A stretch of DNA of 64,000 nucleotides from Monocercomonoides exilis PA203. Lineage: Eukaryota > Protista > Preaxostyla. The notes under the pieces are model-generated. The model made no database searches and was not told the DNA's origin. It saw only the letters and a list, made by a program, of their open reading frames with translations. Where the stretch lies: the NCBI GenBank assembly GCA_001643675.2, contig LSRY02000046.1:248001-312000 (forward strand). The letters run 5' to 3'. Every line of letters begins with the position of its first letter. The stretch's first letter is position 1. Positions 1 to 57,409 of the stretch are shown here, piece by piece. The translations under genes and the position numbers were made by a program.

Positions 1-3000
1 ATCATTGGAGGCAACCAACCTGTTTATGAGTTCCCTCCGTTCTTTTACTCACCGCGGTGGATGAAGAACACAACAGAAGAGGTGAAGTTCTTTATCACCT
101 CACATGGCTTGTCGGAGTATGTGTTCTCTTCATCAGATGTGTTAACACCAGATATGCTCTTCCAGTCCTCTTTCCTTCCGCTTCGCTACATCAGTCCTGA
201 AGGTTCAATCGACCCCTCATCTTTGCTTGTGTCGCAGTTTACTCCTTCTCCGACAACGCCCACGCCTGCACTTCCTAATGCACCTTCATCGTCCTCGTCG
301 TCTTCGTCTTCATCTTCTTCTGGAACGTCCACTCCAGAAGTCCGTGCAACCACACCTTGTTCCACATCTTCTGCATCTGCCTCATCAGCCTCGTCTATAC
401 AATCTGCATCATCCAATCCTTTTGCCACTCCAATTTCACTGGCACACCGCAGAGAACCAAAAAGAAAGCCAGAAGTGGTCGATCCGGTGCGTGGATCGTC
501 GCTTGTGAAGCAGCTGTGCGATCAAATGGCATCGAACTTCGAAGGGAAGATCAATGGACTTGTGGAGAATGCAGTGAAGGCGCTGGTGGAAGTGATACAA
601 GTCAATGTTGACACACCCAATGCTCCTAAAGAATGGGTACAATGCAATCCGTCAGCTTTCCACTTGGATCATTTCTTTGGATTGCTCTATTGGCTTCTCT
701 CCTGCCGCTATTCGTCTCGCTCTGCTGATCCATACATCGTGGTGGCCAAGTCTGAAACTATCAGCCCTGCATTCCTCACGTCGTTGCTTACACTCAGCAC
801 GTATTTGTCGAATGAAGCATTCAAAAACTACATCGATCTCAATCGCCTTTCGTTGATGCGACTGTTTTCATTGATTGCGATGAGGAGAGAGTTTGCAGAG
901 CAGTTATGGGTGTGCAGCCTTGCCACTCCGCAGACAAAGATCATTGGAGTAGAGCTTCCTGTGCCTAAAGCAATGAACATCGAGATGAAGACATACCTGG
1001 ACGAGATTGTGTATGCACAGGTCTCATTCCTTCTGATGCTGTGTGAATGGAGCAGCATGCTTTACAGCGAGCTGCTGGGGAGTGTGGTGCATGTGTCACT
1101 GGCACAGCACATCATATCGCACAGACGCTCATTTCCTCGTTCTTCTGCAGTGATGTTCACCTTCATTGCCCAAGCAATGGCAAGCATCGAAGACGAGAAA
1201 ATCCGCGCATCCACAGGAATAAACATCATCCTCAATGAAGTTGGTATGCCAGCGTTGGATCTGCGCCCATCAGTCAGCCTTCTTTCTCTTGTGTTCTTTC
1301 CCGTTCAGATCATCCAAAAGGGAGCGGCATACCTTTTCTCTCCAACATACACGCACCACAAGCTCAGTCGAGCAACAGTTCCCCAAATCGACCAGATGTA
1401 TGGGACATTCCAAAACGCACTTGAATCTGCTTCGAATGAACAAAGTTCGCCTCAAGTAGATCACCTTTCGCTTTCGACTCTTCCTTCTCCTGTCTCACGT
1501 TCAACAGCTCTCAATGTTTCATTCCCATTGTCTCCTTCTTCTTCTTCATCAAGCAATTCGATGTGTGCCAGTGGAGCATCGACAGTTCTGTCAACACCAT
1601 CAGCCCAGCGATTAACCCAACAACAGCTACAGCTTCAGACAGTTGCTGAAATGCCATATCAGACGCTTTCGTATTCACTGGCTCCATTTTCGAGAGACGG
1701 CACTCTTCGGCGAGCGACACAAAGTACAACAAAGGACATCACACGGCACTTGATATCGACACAGTCACCAGGCCAGCACCAGGAAATCATCATAGATATG
1801 CTGAAAAAGATTGTCTCATCTATCAATCCGCTCGAAGACCCGTTCTTCTCCGCGAACGTTATGTTCTCTGATGCATTTCTGGAGCATCCATCTTCTGTGA
1901 ATCACCCGCTCTTCCAGATACTCGACGTATGCGATGTGATCATAACAGACTGGTTCAGCGAGACCATCCGTGGCTCCAGAAGAGACATGCTGTATCAGTT
2001 TCCTGAGCTATCGATGGCATTGTTTGGCTCTTGTGAACCGCTTCTTTCTCGTGCATATGCGTCTGTAGGCCTTTCGTCATCTTCTGCAGTGCCAATTATG
2101 ATATCTGGACAAACACTAACTTCAATGTTTATCTCACTGGCTTCTCTAACATGTGCCTCATTTCCGCTTTTCGTGCGTGGCAGAGCAACTCGGCTGATTG
2201 TGCTTCTTCTTCCGTCTGTCTGCGACCACACGGCACGAATGGACGAGATGATGCTGGATGCGCTGCTGTGTGCGATGGAGTCTGTGTTTGAGAGAGAGAG
2301 CGACTTTGAAAAGAAGAACCAGTTCTTGAACGACGGAACAAACAACATCATGGCAGGCATTTTGACTCAAGACACAAAGGATTCAGTGTCATCTTCATTT
2401 GAATCAGATGCAGTTGTGCCGTTTTCGTTCTTAATCAACTACTCGTCCAACACGCCACCAGAGTACAATGCGATGCCTTCTCCATTCTCTTCTCTTATCC
2501 TTCCTTCGCGATCGTCTTCAGCCTCGGTATCGTCTTTGTCTGCTTCTACGGTCAATTCTTTCTCTTCTTCCCTTCAAAACACTCGTCCTCACACTAATCC
2601 CTCAGAATGCAACCAACGCAGTGTCGATCTTTTGAGCCGCTGGATGATGTTTCTGTGCTTCAGCGTCGGACATATCTGTTCTTTATCAAGCAAAACAACA
2701 AGAAACGTGTTTGGGCCAGGGGCTGCAATTAGAGGAGATGATGGTTCGGATGAGAGAGAGCGCGAAGGAAGCAAGAAAGTACGTTGGACAACAACTCAGA
2801 TCACAGAAAGAATTGCACCTCTTCTGCCGATTGGCTACAGCGGAAGGAAAGAGGAGCTGAGGAGAGACGAGTGGATCAAGACGAAAGTGCAGCGTCTGAA
2901 TGAGATGCTACTCTTCTTCTCTGTCCATTCAAGTGCAATCACAAATTCCAATCTGGATGCCTCTGTTTCATCTTCTTTTGCGTCTGCATCTTCCTCTGCC

Positions 3001-3999
3001 ACTCTGACTGATACCATCCACACGCACTCCACTGTTTCTGTGAAGCCTGAAGGCGCCAAGTGCTGGCATCCATTTGTGGAAGCACACAACCCGAACATTC
3101 TCTCTTTTACTTCGTACATCGAGGAAAGCCCTGTCGTAGCAGCGAATGTGATGAATCTCTTCCAGCCACCTGACAACTTCCCAGGGAAGGGATTGAAGGC
3201 GTACCAGCCATCGACACACTTCTTCTTGCCTTCCGTGTATCACATCTTTATGCAGCACCCAACCCTTTTCCTTTCTGTGAGGCCGCTCCATTCTCCCAAC
3301 CACAGATCCCACCAGGAATTGTACCGCTTGCTGCTATCTTCTGTCGCTGCATCAGTCTTTTCGCGCTCTCACCCTCCGCTTCTGACACGCTTTTCTGTCG
3401 CTACAGCAACAATGCAGTGGAATATTGTGCGTTTTGCATTTGTGCCTCATCTGACAGGGATTTTCTCTGCAAACAGTTCGAGTAACTCGAGGAACAGTGC
3501 GTCGTGCAGCGGAGATGCAACAGGAACGTCAGAATCTTCCACTGCGCTACATTCGCTTTCGGATACAAACAAGAAGGAGAAGCTGCGCCTTCTGTTTCTG
3601 ACATCACTGGAAAAACGACTGGATGAACTTGATGCAATCTGGTCACAACCAGCCATCCAGGAATCGCTATCATCTGACTGTGATTATGCTGCTGCTATTC
3701 TTCACATTGTGATTTTCTCTCTGACGATATTTTCATTCCCTCATTCTCTTGTTTCATACACTGTGAAAAAGCATTTGTCTTCATTGAGCACTATCATACA
3801 GCTGCTTTGTCTCCATCCTGCTGTGCATCAAACAGACTATTCCGAAGATTCAACGATGTCACAATTACCTGAGGGATCCACAAGAACACGCTTAGGACAA
3901 CCTGTTATTTCGCTTCAGAACCACATAATGCTCAGCGAATGCTATTTGTGGCTTACAAATTTTTTGAAAATTACTGTGCCTGATGTTTCAAATGAATGA
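1..3999 (+). CDS. Large Ser-rich hypothetical protein, probably 5'-partial (long terminal exon)
   Basis: 1312-aa ORF; the frame is open back to base 1; higher GC than flanks; AT-rich 3' UTR follows the TGA. No domain recognised. Confidence 0.8.
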   Translation: MIGGNQPVYEFPPFFYSPRWMKNTTEEVKFFITSHGLSEYVFSSSDVLTPDMLFQSSFLPLRYISPEGSIDPSSLLVSQFTPSPTTPTPALPNAPSSSSSSSSSSSSGTSTPEVRATTPCSTSSASASSASSIQSASSNPFATPISLAHRREPKRKPEVVDPVRGSSLVKQLCDQMASNFEGKINGLVENAVKALVEVIQVNVDTPNAPKEWVQCNPSAFHLDHFFGLLYWLLSCRYSSRSADPYIVVAKSETISPAFLTSLLTLSTYLSNEAFKNYIDLNRLSLMRLFSLIAMRREFAEQLWVCSLATPQTKIIGVELPVPKAMNIEMKTYLDEIVYAQVSFLLMLCEWSSMLYSELLGSVVHVSLAQHIISHRRSFPRSSAVMFTFIAQAMASIEDEKIRASTGINIILNEVGMPALDLRPSVSLLSLVFFPVQIIQKGAAYLFSPTYTHHKLSRATVPQIDQMYGTFQNALESASNEQSSPQVDHLSLSTLPSPVSRSTALNVSFPLSPSSSSSSNSMCASGASTVLSTPSAQRLTQQQLQLQTVAEMPYQTLSYSLAPFSRDGTLRRATQSTTKDITRHLISTQSPGQHQEIIIDMLKKIVSSINPLEDPFFSANVMFSDAFLEHPSSVNHPLFQILDVCDVIITDWFSETIRGSRRDMLYQFPELSMALFGSCEPLLSRAYASVGLSSSSAVPIMISGQTLTSMFISLASLTCASFPLFVRGRATRLIVLLLPSVCDHTARMDEMMLDALLCAMESVFERESDFEKKNQFLNDGTNNIMAGILTQDTKDSVSSSFESDAVVPFSFLINYSSNTPPEYNAMPSPFSSLILPSRSSSASVSSLSASTVNSFSSSLQNTRPHTNPSECNQRSVDLLSRWMMFLCFSVGHICSLSSKTTRNVFGPGAAIRGDDGSDEREREGSKKVRWTTTQITERIAPLLPIGYSGRKEELRRDEWIKTKVQRLNEMLLFFSVHSSAITNSNLDASVSSSFASASSSATLTDTIHTHSTVSVKPEGAKCWHPFVEAHNPNILSFTSYIEESPVVAANVMNLFQPPDNFPGKGLKAYQPSTHFFLPSVYHIFMQHPTLFLSVRPLHSPNHRSHQELYRLLLSSVAASVFSRSHPPLLTRFSVATATMQWNIVRFAFVPHLTGIFSANSSSNSRNSASCSGDATGTSESSTALHSLSDTNKKEKLRLLFLTSLEKRLDELDAIWSQPAIQESLSSDCDYAAAILHIVIFSLTIFSFPHSLVSYTVKKHLSSLSTIIQLLCLHPAVHQTDYSEDSTMSQLPEGSTRTRLGQPVISLQNHIMLSECYLWLTNFLKITVPDVSNE

Positions 4000-8773: not shown

Positions 8774-9046
8774 CACTTCGATTCTTAAAAGTTAATGAAA
8801 TTTTGGATTTATTTAATTAAAGTTTTAAAAGAAAAGTAATTTTGAAAATTGATTCTTCAAAAATTATTCTTGTTACAAATTTTGATAAAAATGCAAAAAG
8901 AAACATATATCTAAATTAGCATGAATGAAAGCATTCTTTCATATTATTTTTTTAGATTAATAGGAATATTTTTAAATCACACGTTTTTAAACAATTGTTA
9001 TAAAAATTGGGTTAGAGTTTTTTCTTGTTCATTTTTCTAAATACTT

Positions 9047-9252
9047 GGCTGATCCTTTTTGAAATCATACTTTCGTTCGAGTTTTGATCAAAAATTTAAT
9101 CTCAATGGGATTTAGAAAAAAATGAGTTGAAATAGTGAACACTTATTGTTAATGACATTGCTACTGCAAAAACAAATTTTTATTCAAATCCCATTGAAAA
9201 CAAAATTTTGATCAAAACTCGAACGAAAGTATGATTTCAAAAAGGATCAGCC
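9047..9252. mobile_element. MITE family A (GGCTGATCC TIR), copy 1
   Basis: About 45-bp perfect TIR GGCTGATCCTTTTTGAAATCATACTTTCGTTCGAGTTTTGATCAAAA; ACTT on both flanks; second copy at 46956-47160. Confidence 0.85.
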
Positions 9253-9889
9253 ACTTATTAAAAAATGAGGTTTTAAAAATGTAAAAAAAAATCAAATTTT
9301 TCGAATAAAATTATTTCAGAATTAATGTTTCAATACTTTTCATTTTTCCTTCAGCTCGATTCATTGAATCACACAGTTAATCATTATCAGAATCGTCACA
9401 ATCGATTTGTTTCAAATTTTCTTTTCTCCGTTTTCTTTTCTACAACAGCTGCTCTCACTTCATTTTATTTCATTTTCGTTCATTTCAATTATCGAATTAA
9501 ATTTTCAGCTTTAAATGATTTTTCGGTTTTTGTTGAAGACTTTCATCAATTAAATTTTTATATGCAGATGTTTTATCTTCAATCTAAACTGAAAACATTC
9601 ACATCAAATATTATCAACGTTGGTGTTAATCACATTTTTGTGTGCAATAACATATCTCGTACGTTTTCATTCATTTTCCATGGTTCATAATAACTCGGCT
9701 GAATAAGAATGTTTACAATTATTTTTCACGATGAGTGGATTTTTAATTTTGAAAAATCGATTTTTTGATCAAAAATTGCTTATATTCGAATTTCAAATAA
9801 TTCTTTTGTGACATGACATGTCAAAAATCATTTATCTGTCACAAAGAAAAAAGAAAGAAAAAATTCGAAATTCGAATTAACAATCAAAT

Positions 9890-10620: not shown

Positions 10621-12301
10621 TTTCAATCGTTTTGTATGTGACATGAATAAAGGAAAAAAAAACATAAGATTATAATAACTATATTTCTTTTAATAAAAAA
10701 TAATAAATACCATATTCGCCTTTAGAAATTGTTGTTTTTGACTTTGCACTAAATGCAACACGATAATTGTGTGAACGCAAGAATATGTTTCGAATAGAAA
10801 ATCAGAAAAATATTACGAAATTTTTCTCAAAACAGGAAGAAAATTTCCCCAGAAAACAGTGATAATATTTTTTCTTTAACAATTTCGAAGATGAAGATTT
10901 TCTTTGTTCATTAAAAAGTTTGTAAATTGATATTTTATTAGATCAGAATAGAACTTTAACAATTTTGTTCAATAAATTACAAATATTAGATCAATTTGAG
11001 TTTTGTCCAACTTTTTTGAATTGACTGAATCAATTCTGATTTGGCTCAATCTTGTATATTATCAAGAATTAAAAATCTTTATGACAAATATGATCAATTA
11101 TGATAAATTTTAAACTTTGATTTTGTTGTATGACAGTTTATTTTAATCAACATTTTTGTCTATAATTCGCACGGCAGTTTGTTATATATTATTGGTGTGT
11201 ATTTAGCTCTTCAATGTGAAAAAATATGAAAATATTGATGTTATTTTTATTGTTTTATCGTTCCAGACAGCCTATGGCAAATGTTTTTGCTGCTTAAAAC
11301 TTTTATAATCAACGTATTTTTTTTAATTTCTCCTTATCTTAAATTTCTCCTTATTTTTAATTATGTTAAAGAAATATATGAAGTGTTCCAATAAAATTTT
11401 CGTTGTAGACAAATTTTTTGAAACTATTTTCGTTTACCATAAACATATAACTTATTACAAAAGCTTTTTATAACATTGTGAAGTTCATATAAATTTCAAT
11501 AGTGGTTGTTTTTTTGATTTCTGATTTATTTTAAATTTTGTTTTATCTGTAATGATTAATTGCATTTAGCATTTCAAATCAATCATCAATTAAGAATAAA
11601 AAAAGAATATCATTGAATACTTGTGTTTTAATAGTTTGAACAACAGCAACAGTTGAATATCGATTTTTTTAAACATTGAATCGGTGAAGCTTCGCTTTAA
11701 AAAAAAAATCACCGACAAATTGATTCAAATGCATTTGGAATGCATTGTTTAATGGAAATCTTTTGATAATAGAGAGCAAAAAAACAATCAAAAAAGATGA
11801 TCATTTTCACAAAAGAGAATCAATCAACATTGACTCAATCAATTCAAACAAAAACAATTCATATCAAATTTTTATCTTTCTTTTTGGCTTTGCTTAGGCA
11901 ACGCCATGTGATTTATCCAAACTGAATAATGTCTTTCAAAAACATTATGAGTCTTGAAAAACAAATAAACATTTGTGACAGTATTTTTTTTAATTTTATG
12001 AAAAAATCAATAATTTGTTCCAAACTATTTCAACTTTGAATTAATGGAATTGAAGCATTCTCGTGAAAAATAAAACAAAGAAATTTCAATATGTTGAGAA
12101 AAATTTTTGAAAGCACTCAATGGAACAAAAAACATAAAGTAAATTATTTTGTACCATTTCAATTTTTTGATTAAAAATTTCGACTTCTTCCATCAACAGT
12201 GCGCTGATAACAATTTGAAGCACTAATAACAATTTAATAATAAAATTTTTAAATGCCTTTTTATCTGTTTCAAAATTAACTTAAACCTAATAATAATAAT
12301 A

Positions 12302-12659
12302 CAGTTTGCACAAAAAATACCGGACAAGATCGATTTCTCAATAACCGCAAGATGAATAATTCTGACAATATTCCTCAAAATATATCTCATCAATGAAAAC
12401 TCACATGATATACAAGACTTTCAAAATATCTTCATTGGCGCTCAGAAATATCAATTTTTTAAATATCGGAGAAATGGAATTTTGAGTTTCTCCGAAATTC
12501 TAATAATTATTTATTTCTGAGCTCAAGTGAGGCTGTTTTGATAGTTTTGTATATCATGTGAATTTTCATTAATGAGATATATTTTGAGGAAAATTGTCAG
12601 AATTATTCCTCTTGCAGTTATTGTGAAATCGATCTTGTCCGGTATTTTTTGCGCAAACT

Positions 12660-12660
<1 letters not shown>
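12302..12660. mobile_element. Tc1/mariner-type MITE family B, copy 1
   Basis: TA|CAGTTTGC...GCAAACTG|TA with imperfect arms of more than 110 bp, inserted in a (TAA)n tract; related copy at 44464-44816. Confidence 0.85.

Positions 12661-12700
<40 letters not shown>
12661..12700. repeat. (TAA)n microsatellite
   Basis: About 13 TAA units; a shorter tract lies on the other side of the MITE. Confidence 0.95.
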
Positions 12701-12726
12701 TATATAAGTGAACCTTAATAAGATAT

Positions 12727-12966
12727 GTCTAAATTTTTTTGAAAAGTTCCTTTTGTGAAATTTTCTAATAAAATAAAAATTTCATATTTCGATCAAATTT
12801 ATGTTCCCAATTATGAAACTTCACAAAAAATGTAATGATAACATTCTTTTGGATTTATTTCCATTTTGGTGAAGTTTCATAATTGGGAACAAAAAATTGA
12901 TGAAAATATGAAATTTTTATTTTATTAGAAAATTACACAAAAGGAACTTTTCAAAAAAACTTAGAC
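12727..12966. mobile_element. MITE family C, copy 1
   Basis: ATAT|GTCTAA...TTAGAC|ATAT with about 100-bp imperfect arms; related copy at 43786-44023. Confidence 0.82.
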
Positions 12967-13173
12967 ATATGTGAATGTTTGACGTTATGGTTTGAAAAAT
13001 ATTAAGATGGGCTTCATTTTCATTATTGTTTGAAAGATTTCATACCACTTTCTCAAAAGAGAAATGTTAATAACACTTCGACTTATATCCATTGAAGTGT
13101 AATAAACAGATCAGTGATGTTTCTTACGGTAGAAAAATGTTTTTTGTCAATTATCCTCACGTTCAAATCAGTG

Positions 13174-13943
13174 CATCATATATTATTCAAATTTTGTATA
13201 CTTATTATTCGAAATTGGTCAACTAATTATTCAAAATTAATTAAAATCAGTATATTTTGAAAAAAATTATTTTGATATAATATGATCACTGGCTGAGTGT
13301 CAGAAAGTGATTAAAATGTTTTGTTCTTTTCATTATTCTTAGAAAGGATGAAAAATTGAACCTTTAATATTATTATTTGTCGAAAAACATGAAGTTTTTT
13401 GATTTTTCAGAAAAAATTCATCACCATAGAAATCGGATTATTTTCAAATGAATAAACCTCACATTGCTTAACAAAACATCATTCAATCAAAATATTTTAT
13501 TTGTGTCAATTTTACAAACTGGAAACAAGAATTTTTTATCAGTGAATAAATCCATAAATGAATTTTCGGAGTTCTCCTATTGTTATTTATTGTTTATCTT
13601 AAGATTTTTAATTTATATAACATTTCATGATCGAATTATTCATTATTTTTCATAGTGAGGTGAAATAATACAAATATTATCCGATTTCTATGGTGATGAA
13701 TTTTTTCTGAAAAATCAAAAAACTTCATGTTTTTCGACAAATAATAATATTAAAGGTTCAATTTTTCATCCTTTCTAAGAATAATGAAAAGAACAAAACA
13801 TTTTAATCACTTTCTGACACTCAGCCAGTGATCATATTATATCAAAATAATTTTTTTCAAAATATACTGATTTTAATTAATTTTGAATAATTAGTTGACC
13901 AATTTCGAATAATAAGTATACAAAATTTGAATAATAAATGGTG
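13174..13943. mobile_element. Long fold-back element
   Basis: Arms 13181-13438 and 13679-13936 (258 bp) read as exact reverse complements; 240-bp spacer; imperfect terminal extension followed by TA on the right. Confidence 0.85.
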
Positions 13944-28827: not shown

Positions 28828-29586
28828 AGGTGCCTTTGTGGCCATCCAGATGCCCATTTGCTTGCACTTTGAAATGGCTTTGTGTTGTTTGGCGAGGAGA
28901 AAGAATGGCCAAGCGGGGCTGGGGAAAAGGAAGGAAGAAGGCTCGAAATAAGTTGGGATTGAGGAATGGGGAAAGGGAAGGGAAAGCGAACAAAATAACT
29001 GCTTCATGTGCATGTGTGCTCGTGTGAAAAAGAAAGACTCTTTTAAGCGTGTTGAAGAAATGCTGGCAGAATGTTGCAAGAGCACGCAGAATGAATGTGC
29101 TTTTGGGGTGCATGTTTTTGTCCCCTATTGAATATTTTGTTTACACACGTCACCGATAATTCGAAAAAGCAAAGCCAAAACTCTATTTTTTTCAGTTGAT
29201 GAATGTTGCTTGCAAAAAATGGCTTGCACATCTGCGTCATAGATTTTGTTTGACAGAATTGTTTGGGGCGTATCAAGATATATTCTAACAAGACAGTTGT
29301 TTTCAGAAAATATTTGAAATGGGAGAAAAAAGTTTTTTTCTTGCTAATTCTTAATTTATCGAAATTATTCATCAATACATTCATTTGTTTCGATCATTCA
29401 ACAAAGTTTCATTTGAAGCGTAATTTTTGAAATCACTTATTTTTTTCTTTGTTTGTCCTTTTTGGCCGTGCAACAATATTAATAAATTCTTTAAAATTCA
29501 AACTCATTCCCTTTCAACAATGCAATAAATAATTGTTTGTTGTATTTTCATGTGAATTACTTCTCCTGGATTAAATAAGTTCATTT

Positions 29587-29843
29587 GGGTGAATATTTTT
29601 GTAATCATAACTTTTTTCGGGGTATTAATGTTTTTATATGTTATTGACCATCTGGAAGAGATTTTGAATTCAAATACTGAATTCATCACGACTGTTTTAA
29701 AAAAACAAATGTGAAAGCTAAAAAAAGACGAAGATCTTTTTTATATGCTTGTTTACTTTTCAGTGTTCATTTGTTGATATTCTCGGATATTTTTGAAACT
29801 GAAAATTTAGATTGAAGAAATTTGATTTCAAAAATAATCACCC
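29587..29843. mobile_element. MITE family D (GGGTGATTATTTTTGAAATCA TIR), free-standing diverged copy
   Basis: Ends and length (257 bp) match the MITE nested at 45442-45699; an orphan TIR lies near 29976. Confidence 0.75.
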
Positions 29844-31246
29844 ATATATAAAAACTGTATTTGTCCATTTCTGATTTTTGTGGCTTCTGAAGTTATATCC
29901 CATTTTTGTGCTTGCTTGTTTTGAATGAAGTTGGAATCAATGATGGAACATATTTATCATTGTTAATGTAATGTGGGTGATTATTTTTGATATCGTATTT
30001 CCTCCTTCTCCTCACTCCACGAAATGTTGATTCAATCAAAGAATCGAATCATTGAAATTCCAATTCATATAAAACTATTCTGTGCATTTTATTTCCTTTC
30101 GAAAAAGGTTATAAAGTGAACGTTAATAATGGTGGATACTCTCAATAACAGTGGAAAGTGGAGTTTTTTCAACAACTTTTGATGGTTGCACTTCAACAAA
30201 TTTCTCAGTTATTAAAACATCGTGCGAACAGACTCGTAACACACAGAACTTTAACAACTTGTCTCATTGCGTTTTGAAAAAAAACTAATATTTATGATGC
30301 GTACATAAACCTTCACTCCATTACAAGATGATGCTTGATTAACTGATTGTGAGATTTCATCAAAAGTGTTTATTGTTGAAAAAGACTGAAAATATAATAT
30401 TTGCGTTTTTTCCAAAAGGAAAGAAAGAATGAACAAGCACTCAAAATTAGTTTTGTCATTTTTAACTTCTGATGAAAATTTCATTCTGAACTTAAGCACA
30501 AAAAATAATTCTAAATAAAGAAAAATAAACAATAATAATAATTAATTTTCATAATAAAATATTTTTGATATGTGGGATGGATAACTTTTGTTTTGTGGTG
30601 AAATTTCTCTTTATTTGAATTTCATTAGAATACTTTGTTTATCGATATTAGAAAAATGATGAATTTCTTTAAAAAAAAGAAAAAGAAAGAAAGAAAGAAA
30701 TGAAAAGAAATTTAATAACAATTTCAAATATTTGAGGAAAAAAACATGTTTTCTATGTTTAATAAAGAAATGATTTCATTTCAGATTCATTTCACTGACT
30801 TTTGACATTTTTGAACAAAAAGATCTGAGATTATGGAAAATCCTCAATAAAAACAAAATATATTTTTTCTGAATGCAAACAGTAAGAATGAATCATTTTT
30901 GAATTTCATAAATATCCATCAATTTATTTGGAGATTTATTCTGAAGAATTTGACAAAAAATAAGATTGATCTCAACCCAATGATTTTTTTGAACAATGTC
31001 AACAACTGTTTTGCTGATTTCTGTTGGAGTGCTCTGCATAGAAGAAGCACGCTTCACATGGTCACGACGGCACGACAGTGGGACGTGACGAGCACTTGGA
31101 GAAGGAGTTGGACGCAGGAAAAAGAAGGGTGTATGGGAGCAATCGTGTCATTTCGATGAGAAAAACACGTCAAAAGAAGAATTATGGATTTGAATTAAAT
31201 AAAACAAATTCAGTCGTAGAAGGCACAGCTATTGTTAACACTTGGA

Positions 31247-33109: not shown

Positions 33110-38342
<5,233 letters not shown>

Positions 38343-41940: not shown

Positions 41941-43785
41941 GTTTGATTGAGAAAATAAGAAGAAATGAATATTGTAACTTTAATGTTTTATTTTTCTTTT
42001 TTTGCCATTTCACAAAATTGAAAGCAGATTATAATTCGAAATATGAAAAAGTTTTGTATGTGAATTTTTTTCCTTTTTTTTATTGAAAAAAACTTACAAA
42101 AATAGAAACAAACAAATAATCTTATTGCTTCTTTTCTTCTACATATAATTTCGAAATGACTGGCTGGAACACCGTTGTGCTAAAAAGAATTCTCACACTT
42201 GTTCGTTTGTTAAATATTTCGTCCCCTTTTATGCTCTTTAGAGTAATTAATTAAACTTTTGGCCTTTCACAGCTTTGAAAATCATAAGTGCAAAAGCGTT
42301 CTACGGTTGCACGTAATTCATCAATTTTTTCAGTCTGTTGTAATTAACGCTTCGCTCATCATTAAATGTGAACGTTTTTTCTTTATTTGAACTTTTTCAA
42401 TCCAAGAAACAATCATTTTTAGACTATTCATTTTCTTCAACAACTGAATTAATCTCCAACAGTTTTTCTATAACAAAGATGTTGAATTAACTTAATATTC
42501 ATTTTTCTTTCAAAGACAATTTAGCAGTTTAAGTCATGATTGAAAATATACAAAAGAGATATTTTAAAAATGAATAACAACAAAATCTAAACCTCGACAA
42601 CAAGTCATTCTCAATGTTGTGCTATTGCGTTGAGAAAATAATAAATAGCATTATCATGTTCTTTCTTTTAATGTATGTATTTTACTTAGAAAAAAATGGA
42701 GAATTGAGGGGAAAATTAGAAAAATTATGGAAATAAAGCAGAAAAACAAAATCAATAACAATTCTTTAACACAACTGACTATTTGGTTCTTCTTCGCATT
42801 TTCAAAGCATAAACACATTTCTGACTTGGCGTGACGTCAGAGACAGGTGACGTCAGTGACGCGTCTAAAATCCGATAGCCGCTTACACGTCAGTGAAAAA
42901 TGTGTAATGGATATTTTGATAAAATATTTTTATTTTTCCTTTTTTTTTATGTGACGTGGAAAAATCTGGCACGTCCGTCAAAAATCGAAAAGGTCACGTC
43001 AGAAGTCACCACGTCACCCAGGGTTAATTTTTAGAATTGATATTTCTATATTTTGAAAATTATAATGATTTTTCATTTTTAATTTAGGATATTTTTTTTT
43101 AAAGACAACTTTATTATTCATATAGATTTTATTTTCTTAAAAATGTTTAGGAATCTTGGGATGGTATTTGTCTTTTCATTATTTTTGCATCACGTAATAT
43201 TTTTGAATATTTTTCTCTATTTTTTAAAAATTTCTGCTTAATACAACATTGTGATGGAAGATTTATTATGACATTATTGCAGAAGAAGTGAAAAATAAAT
43301 CTTTATTTTTTTCATGAATGCAAGTATTTTCCCTCATTTATCAAAAAGCATTGAAAAATGATAACTCCATTTTCTAATAAAAACTTTTTTCGTACCTTAA
43401 ATATTGACCTTTTTACTGATAAACCGTATTCAACATTTTCATTAATAACTTCTTGTGAAAGGCAAAATCCATTTTTTTAAATCAACTCCCAATAAAAGTT
43501 TAAATATCTTAAATTTTCATCCATGTGTAATTTTTATGTTTTCTGTATGGTTTCAAGTTTTTTGAATTGAAAAAACGAACATTTGTTTTTTAAAGCCGAG
43601 ATATGACTCATTTGTTTCGTTATTTTTCTTTTGTTGTATTTGAAATTTAAAAAATACGATATTTTTATCATGTTCTCGTTCCCACTCACGAATCTTCACA
43701 AGAATGAATACAGCAGCCATATCACGTTATGGTCTTCATTTTCATAAAAATTTCATGAGTCGGAACAGTTGTTTGATCAAAATAT

Positions 43786-44023
43786 GTCTAAATTTTTTTG
43801 AAAAGTTCCATTTGTTTAATTTTCTAAAAATCAAAAATTTCATATTTCTTTCAAATTTCTGTTTTCACTCACGAAATCACACCAAAACGGATATAATAAC
43901 GTTGTCAAGGATTTGTTTCAATGACAGCATAATTTGGTGAGCAGAAACAGTAATTTGAATGAAATATGAAAATTTTAGTTTTTTGAAAATTAAACAAATG
44001 GAACTTTTCATAAAAATTTTGAA
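43786..44023. mobile_element. MITE family C, copy 2
   Basis: Shares GTCTAAATTTTTTTGAAAAGTTCC with the copy at 12727; ATAT flanks. Confidence 0.75.
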
Positions 44024-44463
44024 ATATTTTTTTTATTCCATTTGATAATTATGTTGGATTACTATTTAAAAGAAATTGGAAATTTTTTCTTATTTTCAAC
44101 ACATAAATTTTTCACCAAATATTATTTAACATGAACAATTTTTATTCGAAATCGAAAAAAAGAAACTCAAGATCAAAAATATTGAATTCAAAATCGAAAA
44201 TTGTTAATCACAAAAAAATTCAAAAATGGTCCAAAATTCAGTTTCATCTGTTGTTATTCTTTTTGTGAATGAAGAGAGAAATATAACAATTTCGAACTTT
44301 TTTTTTAACTTTTTCGAAGTTTTTTTGGTGTTCGATTGTGTGCAGATGCGTTATTAGGAAAAATATGGATTTTCATAATAGTCTTCACATGTGCTCAGGA
44401 GATAATAAGAAATTTTGTCAATAAAATAAAAGAAAAAAAGAAAAAAATAAAAAAAAAGAAAAA

Positions 44464-44816
44464 GATATCGTAAAAAATACCGGACAAGATCGATTTGACA
44501 ATAACTGCAAGAGAAATAATTCTGACAATTTTCCTCAAAATATATCTCATCAATACAAACTCATTTGATATATAAAACTTTTAATATATCTTTATTGGTG
44601 CTCAAAAAAAATTAATGATTGAAATCTCGGAGAAGCTCAAAATCCAATTTCTCCGATTTTTAAAGAATAATTTTTTGAGTACAAATGAGGCTATTTTGAA
44701 AGTTTCGTGTATCAACTGAGTTTGTATTTATGAGATGTATTTGGAGGAAAACTGTCAGAATCATTCCTCTTGCGGTTATTGAGAAATCGATCTTGTGCGG
44801 TATTTTTTGCGATGTC
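44464..44816. mobile_element. MITE family B, copy 2 (different extreme termini)
   Basis: AAAAAATACCGGACAAGATCGATTT and the interior are colinear with 12302-12660. Confidence 0.8.
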
Positions 44817-45441
44817 CGGTGTTTTGTGCAATATTTGTTCAATTGTTCATAATCTTGTATCACCCTCAAAAAGACAGAAATTAACTCGTATATTTGAAAC
44901 GAAATGCTTTTAACAAGGTTAGTTTAACATAAAACAGAAAAAATTGACCTCTTTGATTTTATTATTGAGTGAAGGATTTATTCATATCTGTCTTAATCAT
45001 GGAAAACAGTTGCAGAGAATAAAAGAAAAACATTCTCAAAAAATTAACATTAGTAATTTTCAACATAAGTTTCAATGTAATTTTCTTGGTTTTCACTTGA
45101 ATTGAATATCTGTATTCATTGACTGCTTTTTCGATTTTGAATTTAAGATTTTGATGTCGAATAATCTTAGTGTGGTTTTTTCATCCGGACTTTTTTTTTA
45201 TCCGGACAAAAATTTAAAATTAAAATATCTCAACAAACATTCAATATCAATTTACAGAAATTTGCATGGTTGTATATTAACATATGTGACATCTATTCAT
45301 ATACATAATTTTAATAGCAGTGTTGTATAATTTAAGAAATAAATTATTTTTATTTTTGAAAATCCGACTTTTGATGAATTTTTCTATTTTAATAAAATGA
45401 TTTGGTTCGTCTTTAATACATAGTAATTATTTTTTCTATAT

Positions 45442-45699
45442 GGGTGATTATTTTTGAAATCATATCTTTTTTCGGGGTGTTGACTTTTCAATGACTGTTG
45501 GTTTTTTGAAAGAAAATTTTAATACAAAAGAGAAAAAGCATGATAATTGTATTTTGAAACAAATGTTTTTTCCGAATTGAAGATTAAAATGTGTTCAATA
45601 AGCCTTTTCACTTTTCAAATTATTTTTAATTGATATTCAAGAAATATTTTTGCACCGATTTTTTTGTATGAAAAAATATGATTTCAAAAATAATCACCC
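45442..45699. mobile_element. MITE family D nested in the left arm
   Basis: ATAT|GGGTGATTATTTTTGAAATCATAT...ATATGATTTCAAAAATAATCACCC|ATAT. Confidence 0.88.
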
Positions 45700-46198
45700 A
45701 TATTGTAAATTATTCTGATTATTTTTTATTTTCCACAATTTGCTCTTTCAAATGGAATGAAAATCTGTCATATTTGAAAAATTTTTGTCAATGGGACAAC
45801 TTAAAAAATATTTTTCATTAAATGCAACCCCATCGAACTAAAACAAACGTATGCATTAATTAATATAACAGTTATACAAAATTACTGACTAATTGTTATT
45901 CAAAATGTTTCAATATTTATTTCTGAAAACAAATTTAAATTGAAATAAAAACAAATTGATTTGTGATATTTATCATTCATGGATGTTAATCAATTAAAAT
46001 ATCAACTATGTAGTAATTTTGTATAACTGTTATATTAATTAATGCATACGTTTGTTTTAGTTCGATGGGGTTGCATTTAATGAAAAATATTTTTTAAGTT
46101 GTCCCATTGACAAAAATTTTTCAAATATGACAGATTTTCATTCCATTTGAAAGAGCAAATTGTGGAAAATAAAAAATAATCAGAATAATTTACAATAT

Positions 46199-46456
46199 GG
46201 GTGATTATTTTTGAAATCATATTTTTTCATACAAAAAAATCGGTGCAAAAATATTTCTTGAATATCAATTAAAAATAATTTGAAAAGTGAAAAGGCTTAT
46301 TGAACACATTTTAATCTTCAATTCGGAAAAAACATTTGTTTCAAAATACAATTATCATGCTTTTTCTCTTTTGTATTAAAATTTTCTTTCAAAAAACCAA
46401 CAGTCATTGAAAAGTCAACACCCCGAAAAAAGATATGATTTCAAAAATAATCACCC
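46199..46456. mobile_element. MITE family D, mirror copy nested in the right arm
   Basis: Reverse complement of 45442-45699 at the exactly symmetric position. Confidence 0.88.
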
Positions 46457-46955
46457 ATATAGAAAAAATAATTACTATGTATTAAAGACGAACCAAATCA
46501 TTTTATTAAAATAGAAAAATTCATCAAAAGTCGGATTTTCAAAAATAAAAATAATTTATTTCTTAAATTATACAACACTGCTATTAAAATTATGTATATG
46601 AATAGATGTCACATATGTTAATATACAACCATGCAAATTTCTGTAAATTGATATTGAATGTTTGTTGAGATATTTTAATTTTAAATTTTTGTCCGGATAA
46701 AAAAAAAGTCCGGATGAAAAAACCACCCTAGGTGTGTTTAGTATGAAATAAATATTACGTTGAAACCTTCATTATTATATTTAATTAACAAAACCAACAA
46801 AGTGCTTAACAACTCCAAATGAAAGTTTTTTAATTCACTGATAATCGAATTGTTTATTTTACTCAAAAATTTTGTGACAAATTCGATTTCTCTCATTGCT
46901 GAATGATTACGATATCTATAGTGATCATTCAATCAAATGAATGATAAATCAACTT

Positions 46956-47160
46956 GGCTGATCCTTTTTGAAATCATACTTTCGTTCGAGTTTTGATCAA
47001 AAATTTTTTCTAAAGGGATTTTGAAAAATTGAACTAAAACTGATAATACATATAGTTCATGATGATGTAATTGCAGAAACAAATTTAATTTAAAAATCCC
47101 ATTGAGCTTGAAATTTTGATCAAAACTCGAACGAAAGAATGATTTCAAAAAGGATCATTC
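46956..47160. mobile_element. MITE family A, copy 2
   Basis: Same TIR and length as 9047-9252; ACTT flanks. Confidence 0.85.
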
Positions 47161-47196
47161 ACTTATAACAAGATTTTCAAGGATGAAACTGAAAAC

Positions 47197-48607
47197 GGTA
47201 AAAGTGGAATCAATCGACACCTTTGATCTTAATAAAAACTATTCAAATCTTGGATTATTATTTTTTATAAGTTTATTAATACATCGTATTTCTTAAATAA
47301 ATGCTTTTTTTCAAAAACAAAAAAAAAGAACTTTTCAATCCTTTGATCCATCTTATTTTGAAAAAAGGGTTAAATAATTCATTGTTTATTTTTCTTTTCA
47401 AGAGCATGCAGAAAGATAAAGTTGAATTATCGACATATTTTCGAATGTTTAATGATAACAGTTGTTGTTGGGAATGGTTTAGGACTCAAATTCTTGATAT
47501 ATCAAAAGCAAAGTGCAGTTCATGTGGTTCATTTATGTTTCTTGGAAGAGATTCAATATCATCATTTATTCTTCGCTGTCCTAAATGTAAAAGAAGAAAA
47601 TCACCATTTTCTAATTTGATTAATTATCATTCGAAATTGGGGATTTCAAAATTATTGATGTTACTTCTTTTTCTTTTCCTACGTTTAAATATAACTCAAA
47701 TATCTATTCTACTTAACGTGGACCCATCTACCGTTTCTTTTTACTCAAATACAGCTCGAAGAATAAGGTTGGAGTCATTGCTGTCGGAATCATTGTGGCT
47801 TGGAGGGAAAAATATGATTGTAGAAATTGATGAAATGTTGCTTCGTCGAAGAAAGTACAAAAGAGGAAGAAGGAAAAAACAGATTTGGCTTTTTGGGATG
47901 GTTGAAAGGAATGATTTGGGCAAACAAGGAAATTTTACGATTGTCAGAGTGAGAAATAGAAAAAAAGAAAGCCTGATTCCTATTATTATTACAAACATAA
48001 GAAAAGATAGCATGATTTACTCCGATGAATGGCTTGCATATAGATCATTACCTGAATATGGATATTCCCACAAGACAGTATGTCACAAGTATCGTTACAG
48101 AACTGAAGACGGAGTGTGTACAAATATGATTGAAGGAATATGGTCGCAATTTAGAAAATTTTTATGTACAACAGGTATCAGAGATCGGTTCATAGATGAT
48201 ACAATTGCGGAATTTATATCTTTCAAAAGAAAGAATCTGGATTTCGTCAAATTTTGTCAAAAAATTTTCTATTTTAAAGATAACGATACCCATAATGAAA
48301 AAAAAGATAATAGTGATTCTGAAAATACAGATGATGAATCAAGTTCAGATGAATTATCTATTGTTGAGGATTCTATCTATTATGATTCCGATTCAACAGA
48401 AATTGAAGACGGAGCCAGTGCATCCGAATACAAAGAAGATCACTAAATGAAATTTTCAAATGAACCTTTTTTGTCTAACGTTTCATTTTTTCAAATAACA
48501 ACTAATAAACATTTTCTCTCATCAATTATTTATTTATTTTAAGGTTTTGAATCAAAAATACTCAAAAATGCGATTATTAAAAGGTGTCGGTTGAGTCCAT
48601 TCTTACC
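47197..48607 (+). mobile_element. Full-length Merlin (IS1595/ISXO2-like) DNA transposon
   Basis: Imperfect 28-bp TIRs (GGTAAAAGTGGAATCAATCGACACCTTT and AAAGGTGTCGGTTGAGTCCATTCTTACC); perfect 8-bp TSD CTGAAAAC at 47189-47196 and 48608-48615. Confidence 0.93.
47406..48446 (+). CDS. Merlin/IS1595-family DDE transposase
   Basis: CxxC..CxxC zinc ribbon, HTH-like segment, VEIDE, IYSDEWLAY, TVCH, TNMIEGIW; uninterrupted ORF (alternative ATG at 47301). Confidence 0.93.
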   Translation: MQKDKVELSTYFRMFNDNSCCWEWFRTQILDISKAKCSSCGSFMFLGRDSISSFILRCPKCKRRKSPFSNLINYHSKLGISKLLMLLLFLFLRLNITQISILLNVDPSTVSFYSNTARRIRLESLLSESLWLGGKNMIVEIDEMLLRRRKYKRGRRKKQIWLFGMVERNDLGKQGNFTIVRVRNRKKESLIPIIITNIRKDSMIYSDEWLAYRSLPEYGYSHKTVCHKYRYRTEDGVCTNMIEGIWSQFRKFLCTTGIRDRFIDDTIAEFISFKRKNLDFVKFCQKIFYFKDNDTHNEKKDNSDSENTDDESSSDELSIVEDSIYYDSDSTEIEDGASASEYKEDH

Positions 48608-56345: not shown

Positions 56346-57409
56346 CAATGAGTAAAATACCCGGAACATGGTAAAAAACACGGAATTTTTATTAAAATTC
56401 ATATATCTCGACAAGTTTAAAAAATTAAATTATAATAATTCACACATTCATACATCAGTATATAACACATCTAACCATATTGAAATTTTTATTTGTTGTG
56501 TTGTATTAATGAAGAAATAAATAATTATTATTTTTGATAATCTGACTTTTAATGAATTTTTCTGTTTCAACAAAACGATTCAATTCCTCTTTTACACATG
56601 TAACTTATTTTTTCTTTGTTACAAACTGTTCGGATTATTTTTCATTTTTGGCAATTTGCTATTTCTGACGGAATGAAAATCTGTCATTTTCAAAAAATCA
56701 CAGTCAATGGGATAACTTAAAAAATATTTTTTGCAAAACACAAAAACATCCAAGTGAATTTAACACATGCATCAATAAATATGATAGTTATATAAAATTT
56801 CTTCATTGTTAAAATTTGTAATAATACTATTATTATTTCAAGAATAAAAATTGTTTTCATAATTGATAATTTTAATGATCATTTTCATAGATTTTACAAC
56901 CAAATTGTATTTTGTGAAATACCTACTGAATCATTTTTAATTTTAACAATGAAGAAATTTTATATAACTATCATATTTATTGATGCATGTGTTAAATTCA
57001 CTTGGATGTTTTTGTGTTTTGCAAAAAATATTTTTTAAGTTATCCCATTGACTGTGATTTTTTGAAAATGACAGATTTTCATTCCGTCAGAAATAGCAAA
57101 TTGCCAAAAATGAAAAATAATCCGAACAGTTTGTAACAAAGAAAAAATAAGTTACATGTGTAAAAGAGGAATTGAATCGTTTTGTTGAAACAGAAAAATT
57201 CATTAAAAGTCAGATTATCAAAAATAATAATTATTTATTTCTTCATTAATACAACACAACAAATAAAAATTTCAATATGGTTAGATGTGTTATATACTGA
57301 TGTATGAATGTGTGAATTATTATAATTTAATTTTTTAAACTTGTCGAGATATATGAATTTTAATAAAAATTCCGTGTTTTTTACCATGTTCCGGGTATTT
57401 TACTCATTG
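56346..57409. mobile_element. Long fold-back element (471-bp arms, 122-bp spacer), TA-flanked
   Basis: TA|CAATGAG...CTCATTG|TA; 56346-56816 is the reverse complement of 56939-57409; same family as 45170-46728 but without the nested MITE. Confidence 0.92.

Follow-up and report, generated by a model that had tools for sequence, protein, structure and literature searches.

In the palindromes of sex chromosomes, those of the Y included, and in plastid inverted repeats, gene conversion from arm to arm keeps the arms identical around a unique spacer, so that they resemble each other far more than their age would permit, and changes, insertions among them, end up in both arms; such arms are kilobases to megabases long, bear genes, and are not mobile. 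The Tc4 fold-back and Tc7-type elements of Caenorhabditis elegans are non-coding and ~1-1.6 kb long, with two long inverted arms around a short loop, a transposase encoded elsewhere, and only terminal bases in common with the autonomous element, and Tc4 duplicates TNA at CTNAG. The long inverted terminal repeats of Galileo and Foldback in Drosophila are 98-100% identical within a copy and differ between subfamilies, and repair of a break in one repeat from the other, including repeat growth, has been proposed for them (PMC3573991). On a smaller scale, quasipalindrome correction by template switching homogenizes arms and can enlarge the repeat (PMC8604942, PMC13100816, PMC7202029). How long fold-back repeats stay identical has been a matter of discussion for Foldback and Galileo, in the absence of a clean marker. 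Here, we analyzed FB_A, our label for a 1.56-kb, hairpin-shaped, non-coding DNA transposon of Monocercomonoides exilis PA203, which was delimited by repeat search and direct alignment at positions 45170-46728 of a 64,000-nucleotide (nt) stretch of contig LSRY02000046.1 (positions 248,001 to 312,000 of the forward strand; "the window" hereafter). FB_A carries a nested miniature inverted-repeat transposable element (MITE) at mirror positions in both arms, which we read, with a probability of roughly two in three (0.68), as the product of intramolecular gene conversion, i.e., of templated break repair from arm to arm that copied a 262-bp insertion. Other loci fetched from the genome are labeled L0xx and contigs Cn.

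As the original prediction had claimed, the arms of FB_A are 717-nt reverse complements of each other, matching at 716 of 717 positions; the sole mismatch, 45171 (T) versus 46727, is at the second base of the element. They enclose a 125-nt loop without symmetry, and the whole is bordered by TA target duplications (Table 1), outside which the DNA of the two sides is unrelated, the flanks not being inverted repeats of each other. No open reading frame (ORF) of at least 60 amino acids (aa) lies within 45170-46728, and FB_A holds no tandem array, so that the tandem subrepeats of the Foldback/Galileo type are missing from it. A near-perfect inverted repeat of 717 nt is not to be ascribed to chance. 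Short palindromic elements in the same window (arms of 95-174 nt) show 8-16% mismatches between their arms, evenly spread.

The two nested MITEs lie on opposite strands at mirror positions, as predicted, although each measures 260 bp instead of the 258 bp first given. Their termini read TGGGTGATTATTTTTGAAATCATA, each copy is bordered by its own TA on both sides, and the two are identical at 276 of 276 positions with flanks counted. In the genome searched (82,301,135 bases in 101 contigs), the family numbers ~1,158 copies (2,316 termini), the closest of which (C12:383194-383453) is 99.2% identical to the nested MITE; the sequence at 29587-29843, at first taken for an independent copy, is no more than a diverged relative, with termini 80-94% alike and an interior that is poorly alike. 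Because the 2-bp target duplications of the family vary (GG, CA, AT, TA, AA, and TT), the nested MITE was probably moved by a different enzyme than the fold-back family. Two candidate origins for it were dropped: movement by the pogo-type transposase described below, which a common GGGTG start had suggested, as the duplications are variable 2-bp ones and not TA, and derivation from Merlin, suggested by a neighboring Merlin-type ORF, as there is no 8-9-bp duplication. Paired copies of the MITE, 350-750 bp apart, occur on C2, C9, C11, C25, and C80.

The MITE site is empty in the relatives of FB_A. The closest of these, G000:C15:1282829-1283893 (89-91% identity), has it empty in both arms, and FB_A positions 533-1031 align continuously to C15:1283098-1283621 (86%), across the inner arms and the loop; the site is empty in all other aligned family copies, too. 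The element at 56346-57409, on which the original prediction had relied, likewise lacks the MITE in either arm. It is a member of another subfamily, however, with different termini and ~75% identity to FB_A, and the C15 copy is the better comparator. The arms of the 56346-57409 element are perfect over inverted-repeat positions 4-477 (counted from 56340, the first six positions being flank), with mismatches at 3 and 478-509. As the relatives share the arm-loop-arm plan and have empty sites, the plan predates the insertion of the MITE. These comparisons bear on the idea that the palindrome arose afresh, when fold-back priming at a break gave a single MITE-bearing arm its inverted duplicate. In the family as a whole, both arms do derive from the left end of an autonomous element, so that one end must have been duplicated in inverted form when the family arose, but the loop and inner arms of FB_A are continuous with those of its empty-site closest relative, and both the plan and the two-sided TA are common to the relatives, which makes such an origin of the mirrored MITE extremely improbable.

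Two independent insertions of the same MITE into the same TA, in mirror orientation and one per arm, had been called implausible, and our own arithmetic agrees: ~7e-6 such events are expected at one given site and orientation (1,158 copies, 82.3 Mb, two orientations). The spot may be a favored target, given that a different 2-kb transposon lies within a few bases of the same arm place in L024, but the varied target duplications of the MITE speak against a strong sequence hotspot, and a double insertion would leave unexplained both the 716/717 identity of the arms and the mirrored substitutions seen across the family. We therefore give this explanation a practically negligible chance.

Those mirrored substitutions indicate that arms evolve in concert well beyond FB_A. 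Among 21 A-type copies, the distance from arm to arm is 0-0.068 (median ~0.01) against 0.016-0.19 to the nearest other copy, and substitutions private to a copy are mirrored in 173 cases and one-sided in 42. Arm-versus-arm and copy-versus-copy divergence, which the original prediction had proposed to compare, stand at 0.000 and 0.08-0.24 for columns 40-280 of 16 copies, i.e., there are zero arm-to-arm differences at 3,840 positions, while the same columns differ by 8-24% between copies. Toward the loop, arm-to-arm divergence in the 16 copies climbs from 0.6% to 16%, and the loop itself differs as much within a copy as between copies. In the B/C subfamilies, whichever 40-nt bin is taken, as far as the loop, 10-14 of 14 copies have arms that do not differ in it. 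Close copy pairs show the same pattern, with all differences at columns ~45-345 mirrored, and FB_A differs from its closest relative by 35 mirrored and 6 one-sided changes, all six of the latter within the first 34 columns. The simplest case is the pair L045 (C91:1733625-1734633) and L046 (C16:417117-418125), each with perfect 496-nt arms, which differ only at positions 294 and 776 of 1,069; these are exact mirrors with complementary bases (chance ~3e-4, own arithmetic), and the sequences point to a single mutation that was copied to the other arm. Selection for pairing was rejected as a cause of mirrored changes, as it needs mismatched intermediates and none is seen in the outer arms. Identical arms where copies differ by 8-24%, mirrored differences, the L045/L046 pair, and L028 (below) together uphold the earlier proposal that, once the MITE was in place, one arm was remade on the template of the other. 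L052 and L076, considered as segmental duplicates on which conversion in place could be tested, proved to have different flanks.

Homogenization also appears to vary with arm length. Long palindromes in the window (arms of 327 and 513 nt) are perfect save for the outermost 7 nt or fewer and the innermost 35-50 nt. Among inverted repeats pooled from all fetched DNA, a sample biased by the choice of loci, median identity is 85-87% for arms of 60-150 nt and 99.2% for arms of 350-800 nt. Long homology appears to be needed, arms of at least ~300 nt being kept identical and arms of 175 nt or less not. The short MITE-like palindromes used as controls lie at window 43779-44030, 44464-44816, 46955-47171, 9034-9265, and 12288-12970 (arms of 69-174 nt, 83-91% complementarity). 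The palindrome at window 13174-13943 has 327-nt arms that are perfect at positions 8-276 and decayed beside a 116-nt spacer.

Since the short palindromes of the window keep 8-16% arm differences, the assembly pipeline does not equalize inverted repeats as such. This is relevant to the suspicion that assembly or polishing made the arms identical or placed the MITE in both, for which there is some ground: the PA203 assembly (101 contigs, 82.3 Mbp) was built from Nanopore data with Canu and Nanopolish and then polished in ten rounds of Pilon, for which the short reads used match one arm as well as the other (PMC8767320). However, reads of N50 8.9 kb at ~150x cover the 1.56-kb element from end to end many times over, and polishing could produce neither a 262-bp insertion nor mirrored substitutions between copies at different loci. 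We also compared four short-read runs (dated 2016 and 2022) of one sample, probably the assembled one, over 2,101 letters. Exact unitigs cover the left junction of FB_A (44957-45196), its right junction (46687-46981), a junction of arm and MITE (45359-45465), and, in one unitig of 185 nt (45857-46041), the loop with both inner arm ends; arm unitigs have ~2x the depth of flank unitigs, and none of the 15 listed unitig joints is a precise empty site. Depth at the arm-to-MITE junction is swamped by the 1,158 MITE copies. On balance, we hold an artifact to be very improbable.

Other members of the family record structural events of a related kind. L028 (C14) reads, in order, outer arm, old center, a 242-bp MITE, a mirror image of the old center, and outer arm; the two center copies match at 183 of 186 positions in reverse complement, and each aligns to the whole center of ordinary copies. 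This locus was considered as a second mirrored nested insertion, but it is instead the element's own center that has been mirror-duplicated around a central MITE, and its sequence would fit a break where the nested MITE borders the element, mended by synthesis on the other arm that ran on through the old center. For FB_A, template switching at a replication fork within the inverted repeat, in effect a large-scale quasipalindrome correction without break or transposase, would yield the same end product as repair of one arm from the other, as switching between inverted-repeat arms homogenizes arms, inverts spacers, and enlarges repeats (PMC8604942, PMC13100816, PMC8794818). Yet the described cases concern repeats of tens of bases, a copy of at least 700 nt with a precise return is not documented, and the process should also act on short palindromes, so that the apparent need for arms of at least ~300 nt fits recombination better; we consider fork switching improbable here.

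Self-templated snap-back synthesis coupled to mobilization has more to commend it. During the refilling, from a sister copy, of the gap left by excision of the element, or the synthesis of a new copy, a strand would run through arm and loop, fold back, and copy its own first arm outward, each event yielding freshly identical arms, nested insertions included. Homogenization that is fullest in the outer arm and weakest beside the loop is expected if the inner part is copied from a true template before the fold-back, and in L028 the symmetry axis has shifted to the nested palindromic MITE. The family also seems to have been mobile recently, as we infer from the 99.8% identity of L045 and L046 at different loci. 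At 5 of ~75 loci (L030, L040, L053, L062, and L047), moreover, the 200 bp on the two sides of the element form perfect inverted repeats, although at L047 part of the stretch is possibly still element; the first four are what overshoot would lead one to expect, the flank of L030 (G000:C10:965510-966978) being found nowhere else in the genome; L053 lies at C50:519,386-520,792. These flank palindromes could, however, equally be insertions into the centers of other palindromic elements. L062, whose flank belongs to a repeat family, is on its sequence such an insertion into the center of another palindrome, and the L030 flank reflects either insertion at an exact palindrome center or growth of the palindrome into host DNA. 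At G000:C54:348326-352014, two element copies (L040 and L041) lie 1,146 bp apart in a periodic arrangement whose spacer is bounded by inverted copies of the same 200 bp.

Four further observations count against snap-back synthesis. The genome holds no second copy of the MITE-bearing composite, so that nothing shows FB_A to have moved after the mirroring; the flanks of FB_A itself are not inverted repeats; most B/C copies have perfect arms right up to the loop, and the gradient is thus not general; and a long unrelated palindrome is near-identical as well, which points to the host and not to one transposase. That palindrome (C91:1059980-1068201, containing L099 and L100) has arms of at least 3.19 kb at 99.3%, each with a Merlin-type DDE fragment and 84 nt of fold-back arm; in its paralog at C91:1518692-1523787 (L098 and L101), 457 kb away, the left side is alike at 98.5% and symmetry ends ~130 bp past the same point. 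We regard snap-back synthesis as unlikely, if worth taking seriously. Somewhat more doubtful is the broader notion that fold-back elements renew themselves through a terminus-anchored self-templating step tied to cutting by the transposase, in which one arm is re-made per cycle of excision and gap repair, sometimes overshooting into host DNA. Were it true, terminus-anchored renewal would turn unique flanks into palindromes, and in a genome without end joining, transposons would be a generator of palindromes with identical arms.

We favor gene conversion between the arms because arm identity is all-or-none in most copies, long homology appears to be needed, and conversion is poorer where the homology ends. 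The 260-bp MITE would have inserted once, into a TA of one arm that lies 271 nt inward from the end of FB_A; a later break in the opposite arm would have found its repair template in the MITE-bearing arm of the same element, and synthesis-dependent repair would have carried the 262-bp insertion across, with arms that match at 716 of 717 nt as the outcome. This process would be continual in all family members with long arms. A mutation newly arisen on one side would be either erased or copied to the partner, so that arms would stay identical while copies drift apart; with conversion poor at homology edges, the center would decay and the loop widen. The absence of Ku-dependent end joining in the host may push breaks toward templated repair, for which an arm would find its nearest template in its partner, at a distance of less than 1 kb. 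Metamonads are reported to be without Ku70/80 and DNA-PKcs and are expected to depend on homologous repair (PMC8516963), and a six-frame search of the genome returned no Ku domain match, which is soft evidence. The sequences themselves show the structure, the empty sites, the mirrored substitutions across the family, the dependence on position and, apparently, on arm length, and the lack of a Ku domain; the break as trigger, the identity of the donor arm, and an event in place are our inference.

Several observations weigh against gene conversion or narrow what it can claim. In L024, only one arm contains a pogo-type element (2,010 bp, flanked by TA), at position 275 and thus a few bases from the FB_A site, and L078 has a 256-bp MITE-like insert in a single arm, at position 60 from the end. 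Both sit in a zone that is otherwise perfectly homogenized, which argues that copying of insertions is neither fast nor obligatory; of the nested insertions that the original prediction had proposed to count in one arm or in both, the one in FB_A is two-armed, but these two show that mirroring is not automatic. The family sample comprises ~75 loci of a few hundred, picked by similarity, and the length dependence may be partly an effect of ascertainment. It is the Nanopore assembly that places the MITE in both arms, as the unitigs do not assign the MITE junction to an arm and none spans FB_A. The missing Ku pathway is linked to the process by no more than correlation, and the data do not separate in-place repair from repair coupled to excision. 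Across the sample, six of nine nested insertions lie at or beside the loop, i.e., in ~9% of the length (P ~3e-5, own arithmetic), a clustering that may reflect target preference or the erasure of insertions in the arms.

By its termini and flanks, FB_A is to be classed as a non-autonomous, non-coding fold-back member of the Tc1/mariner-pogo group. The family counts more than 100 non-coding copies in the genome; its terminus, TA followed by GGGTGGTTTTTTTATCCGGAC, has 171 genome matches at up to 3 mismatches against 0 for the reversed control, and a TA duplication flanks nearly all of 27 copies inspected. The two further subfamilies (B/C) have other termini, homologous inner arms, and TA flanks as well. 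A putative autonomous partner emerged from pairs of the same terminus spaced ~2.04 kb apart, represented by L058 (G000:C1:1240256-1242284) and at least 12 similar pairs with TA flanks. This 2.04-kb pogo-type element has short inverted ends (32-35 bp) and a 403-aa ORF that matches Pfam DDE_1 PF03184 (pogo/Tigger type, 1.1e-15), preceded in L058 by a 118-aa ORF; 52 bp at 98% are common to its left end and to both arms of the FB_A family. L064 was considered as a long-armed family member but is actually a larger palindrome with only 84 nt of family arm per side. A 17-bp subterminal unit (TTTTTTTATCCGGAC plus two bases) occurs 2-5 times per end in some copies, its number varying between the ends of one element (e.g., L023, L027, L031, L065, and L073), and this number is the main one-sided difference in the outer arms.

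Table 1. Coordinates of FB_A, its parts, and two related elements in the window
Feature	Position	Strand	Basis and remarks
Left TA target-site duplication of FB_A	45168..45169		Sequence; TA also around nearly all family copies
Left arm, 717 nt; terminus GTGTGGTTTTTTCATCCGGAC, a variant of the family terminus GGGTGGTTTTTTTATCCGGAC	45170..45886	+	Alignment
Nested 260-bp MITE, left-arm copy	45441..45700	+	TA duplications 45439-40 and 45701-02; 271 nt from element end
Asymmetric 125-nt loop, homologous to the loop region of the closest relative	45887..46011		Alignment and short-read unitig
Right arm, reverse complement of the left (716/717)	46012..46728	-	Alignment
Nested 260-bp MITE, right-arm mirror copy	46198..46457	-	TA duplications 46196-97 and 46458-59; 276/276 to left copy
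Right TA target-site duplication of FB_A	46729..46730		Sequence
Related fold-back element of another subfamily, termini TA then CAATGAGTAAAATACCCGGAAC, site empty in both arms	56346..57409		Alignment
Diverged member of the MITE superfamily, only the termini clearly alike	29580..29847		Alignment

Elsewhere in the window, 570 bp to the right of FB_A, AT-rich DNA holds a 381-aa ORF (47301-48446, +) whose match (E 1e-22) is to the IS1595/ISXO2-like DDE domain characteristic of Merlin transposons, a group reported from metamonads (PMC8101967). Many overlapping inverted matches of 60-100 nt at 71-77% link 33671-33828 and 36712-36809, ~2.9 kb apart, around a GC-rich 799-aa ORF, and look like low-complexity periodic sequence. 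GC-rich DNA at 61-3999 (+) bears an unbroken serine-rich ORF of 1,312 aa.

Set beside Tc4, the FB_A family differs in its TA duplication and its oxymonad host and has no sequence relation to it; outside the TA, the left and right flanks continue with different bases, which excludes a 3-bp duplication of the Tc4 type (TNA). In contrast to the large palindromes of sex chromosomes and plastids, the unit here is a 1-kb transposon with more than 100 copies, which amounts to many replicates. Quasipalindrome correction works on repeats of tens of bases, whereas in the FB_A family the tracts reach at least 700 nt and short palindromes are not corrected. Galileo and Foldback are alike to the FB_A family in their long, near-identical inverted repeats, and L028 shows repeat growth of the sort that has been proposed for Galileo. 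Galileo, however, belongs to the P superfamily, with 7-bp duplications and arms of tandem subrepeats, while the FB_A family has a DDE_1 partner, a TA duplication, and arms of unique sequence with only a 17-bp subterminal repeat; and FB_A, unlike Galileo and Foldback, has a nested transposon that marks the copying.

The original prediction had looked on FB_A as a candidate for something undescribed, and there it went too far: repair of one repeat from the other has already been discussed for Galileo (PMC3573991), and the homogenization and growth of arms by template switching has been published (PMC8604942, PMC13100816). What the family offers is markers, i.e., more than 100 replicate palindromes, a copied 262-bp insertion, the axis shift in L028, one-sided insertions as controls, and a single mirrored substitution between sister copies, which jointly set a lower bound of at least ~700 nt on tract length, show which parts of the arms are homogenized, and point to a threshold of homology. 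Repeat annotation and dating that go by the divergence of the arms will make such elements look far younger than they are. As the host has no Ku end joining, the family also lends itself to testing whether losing that pathway drives the maintenance and growth of palindromes. Compared with the systems described before, then, the process is already known in kind, and FB_A represents not a new class but a new family in a new host, with unusually clean markers.

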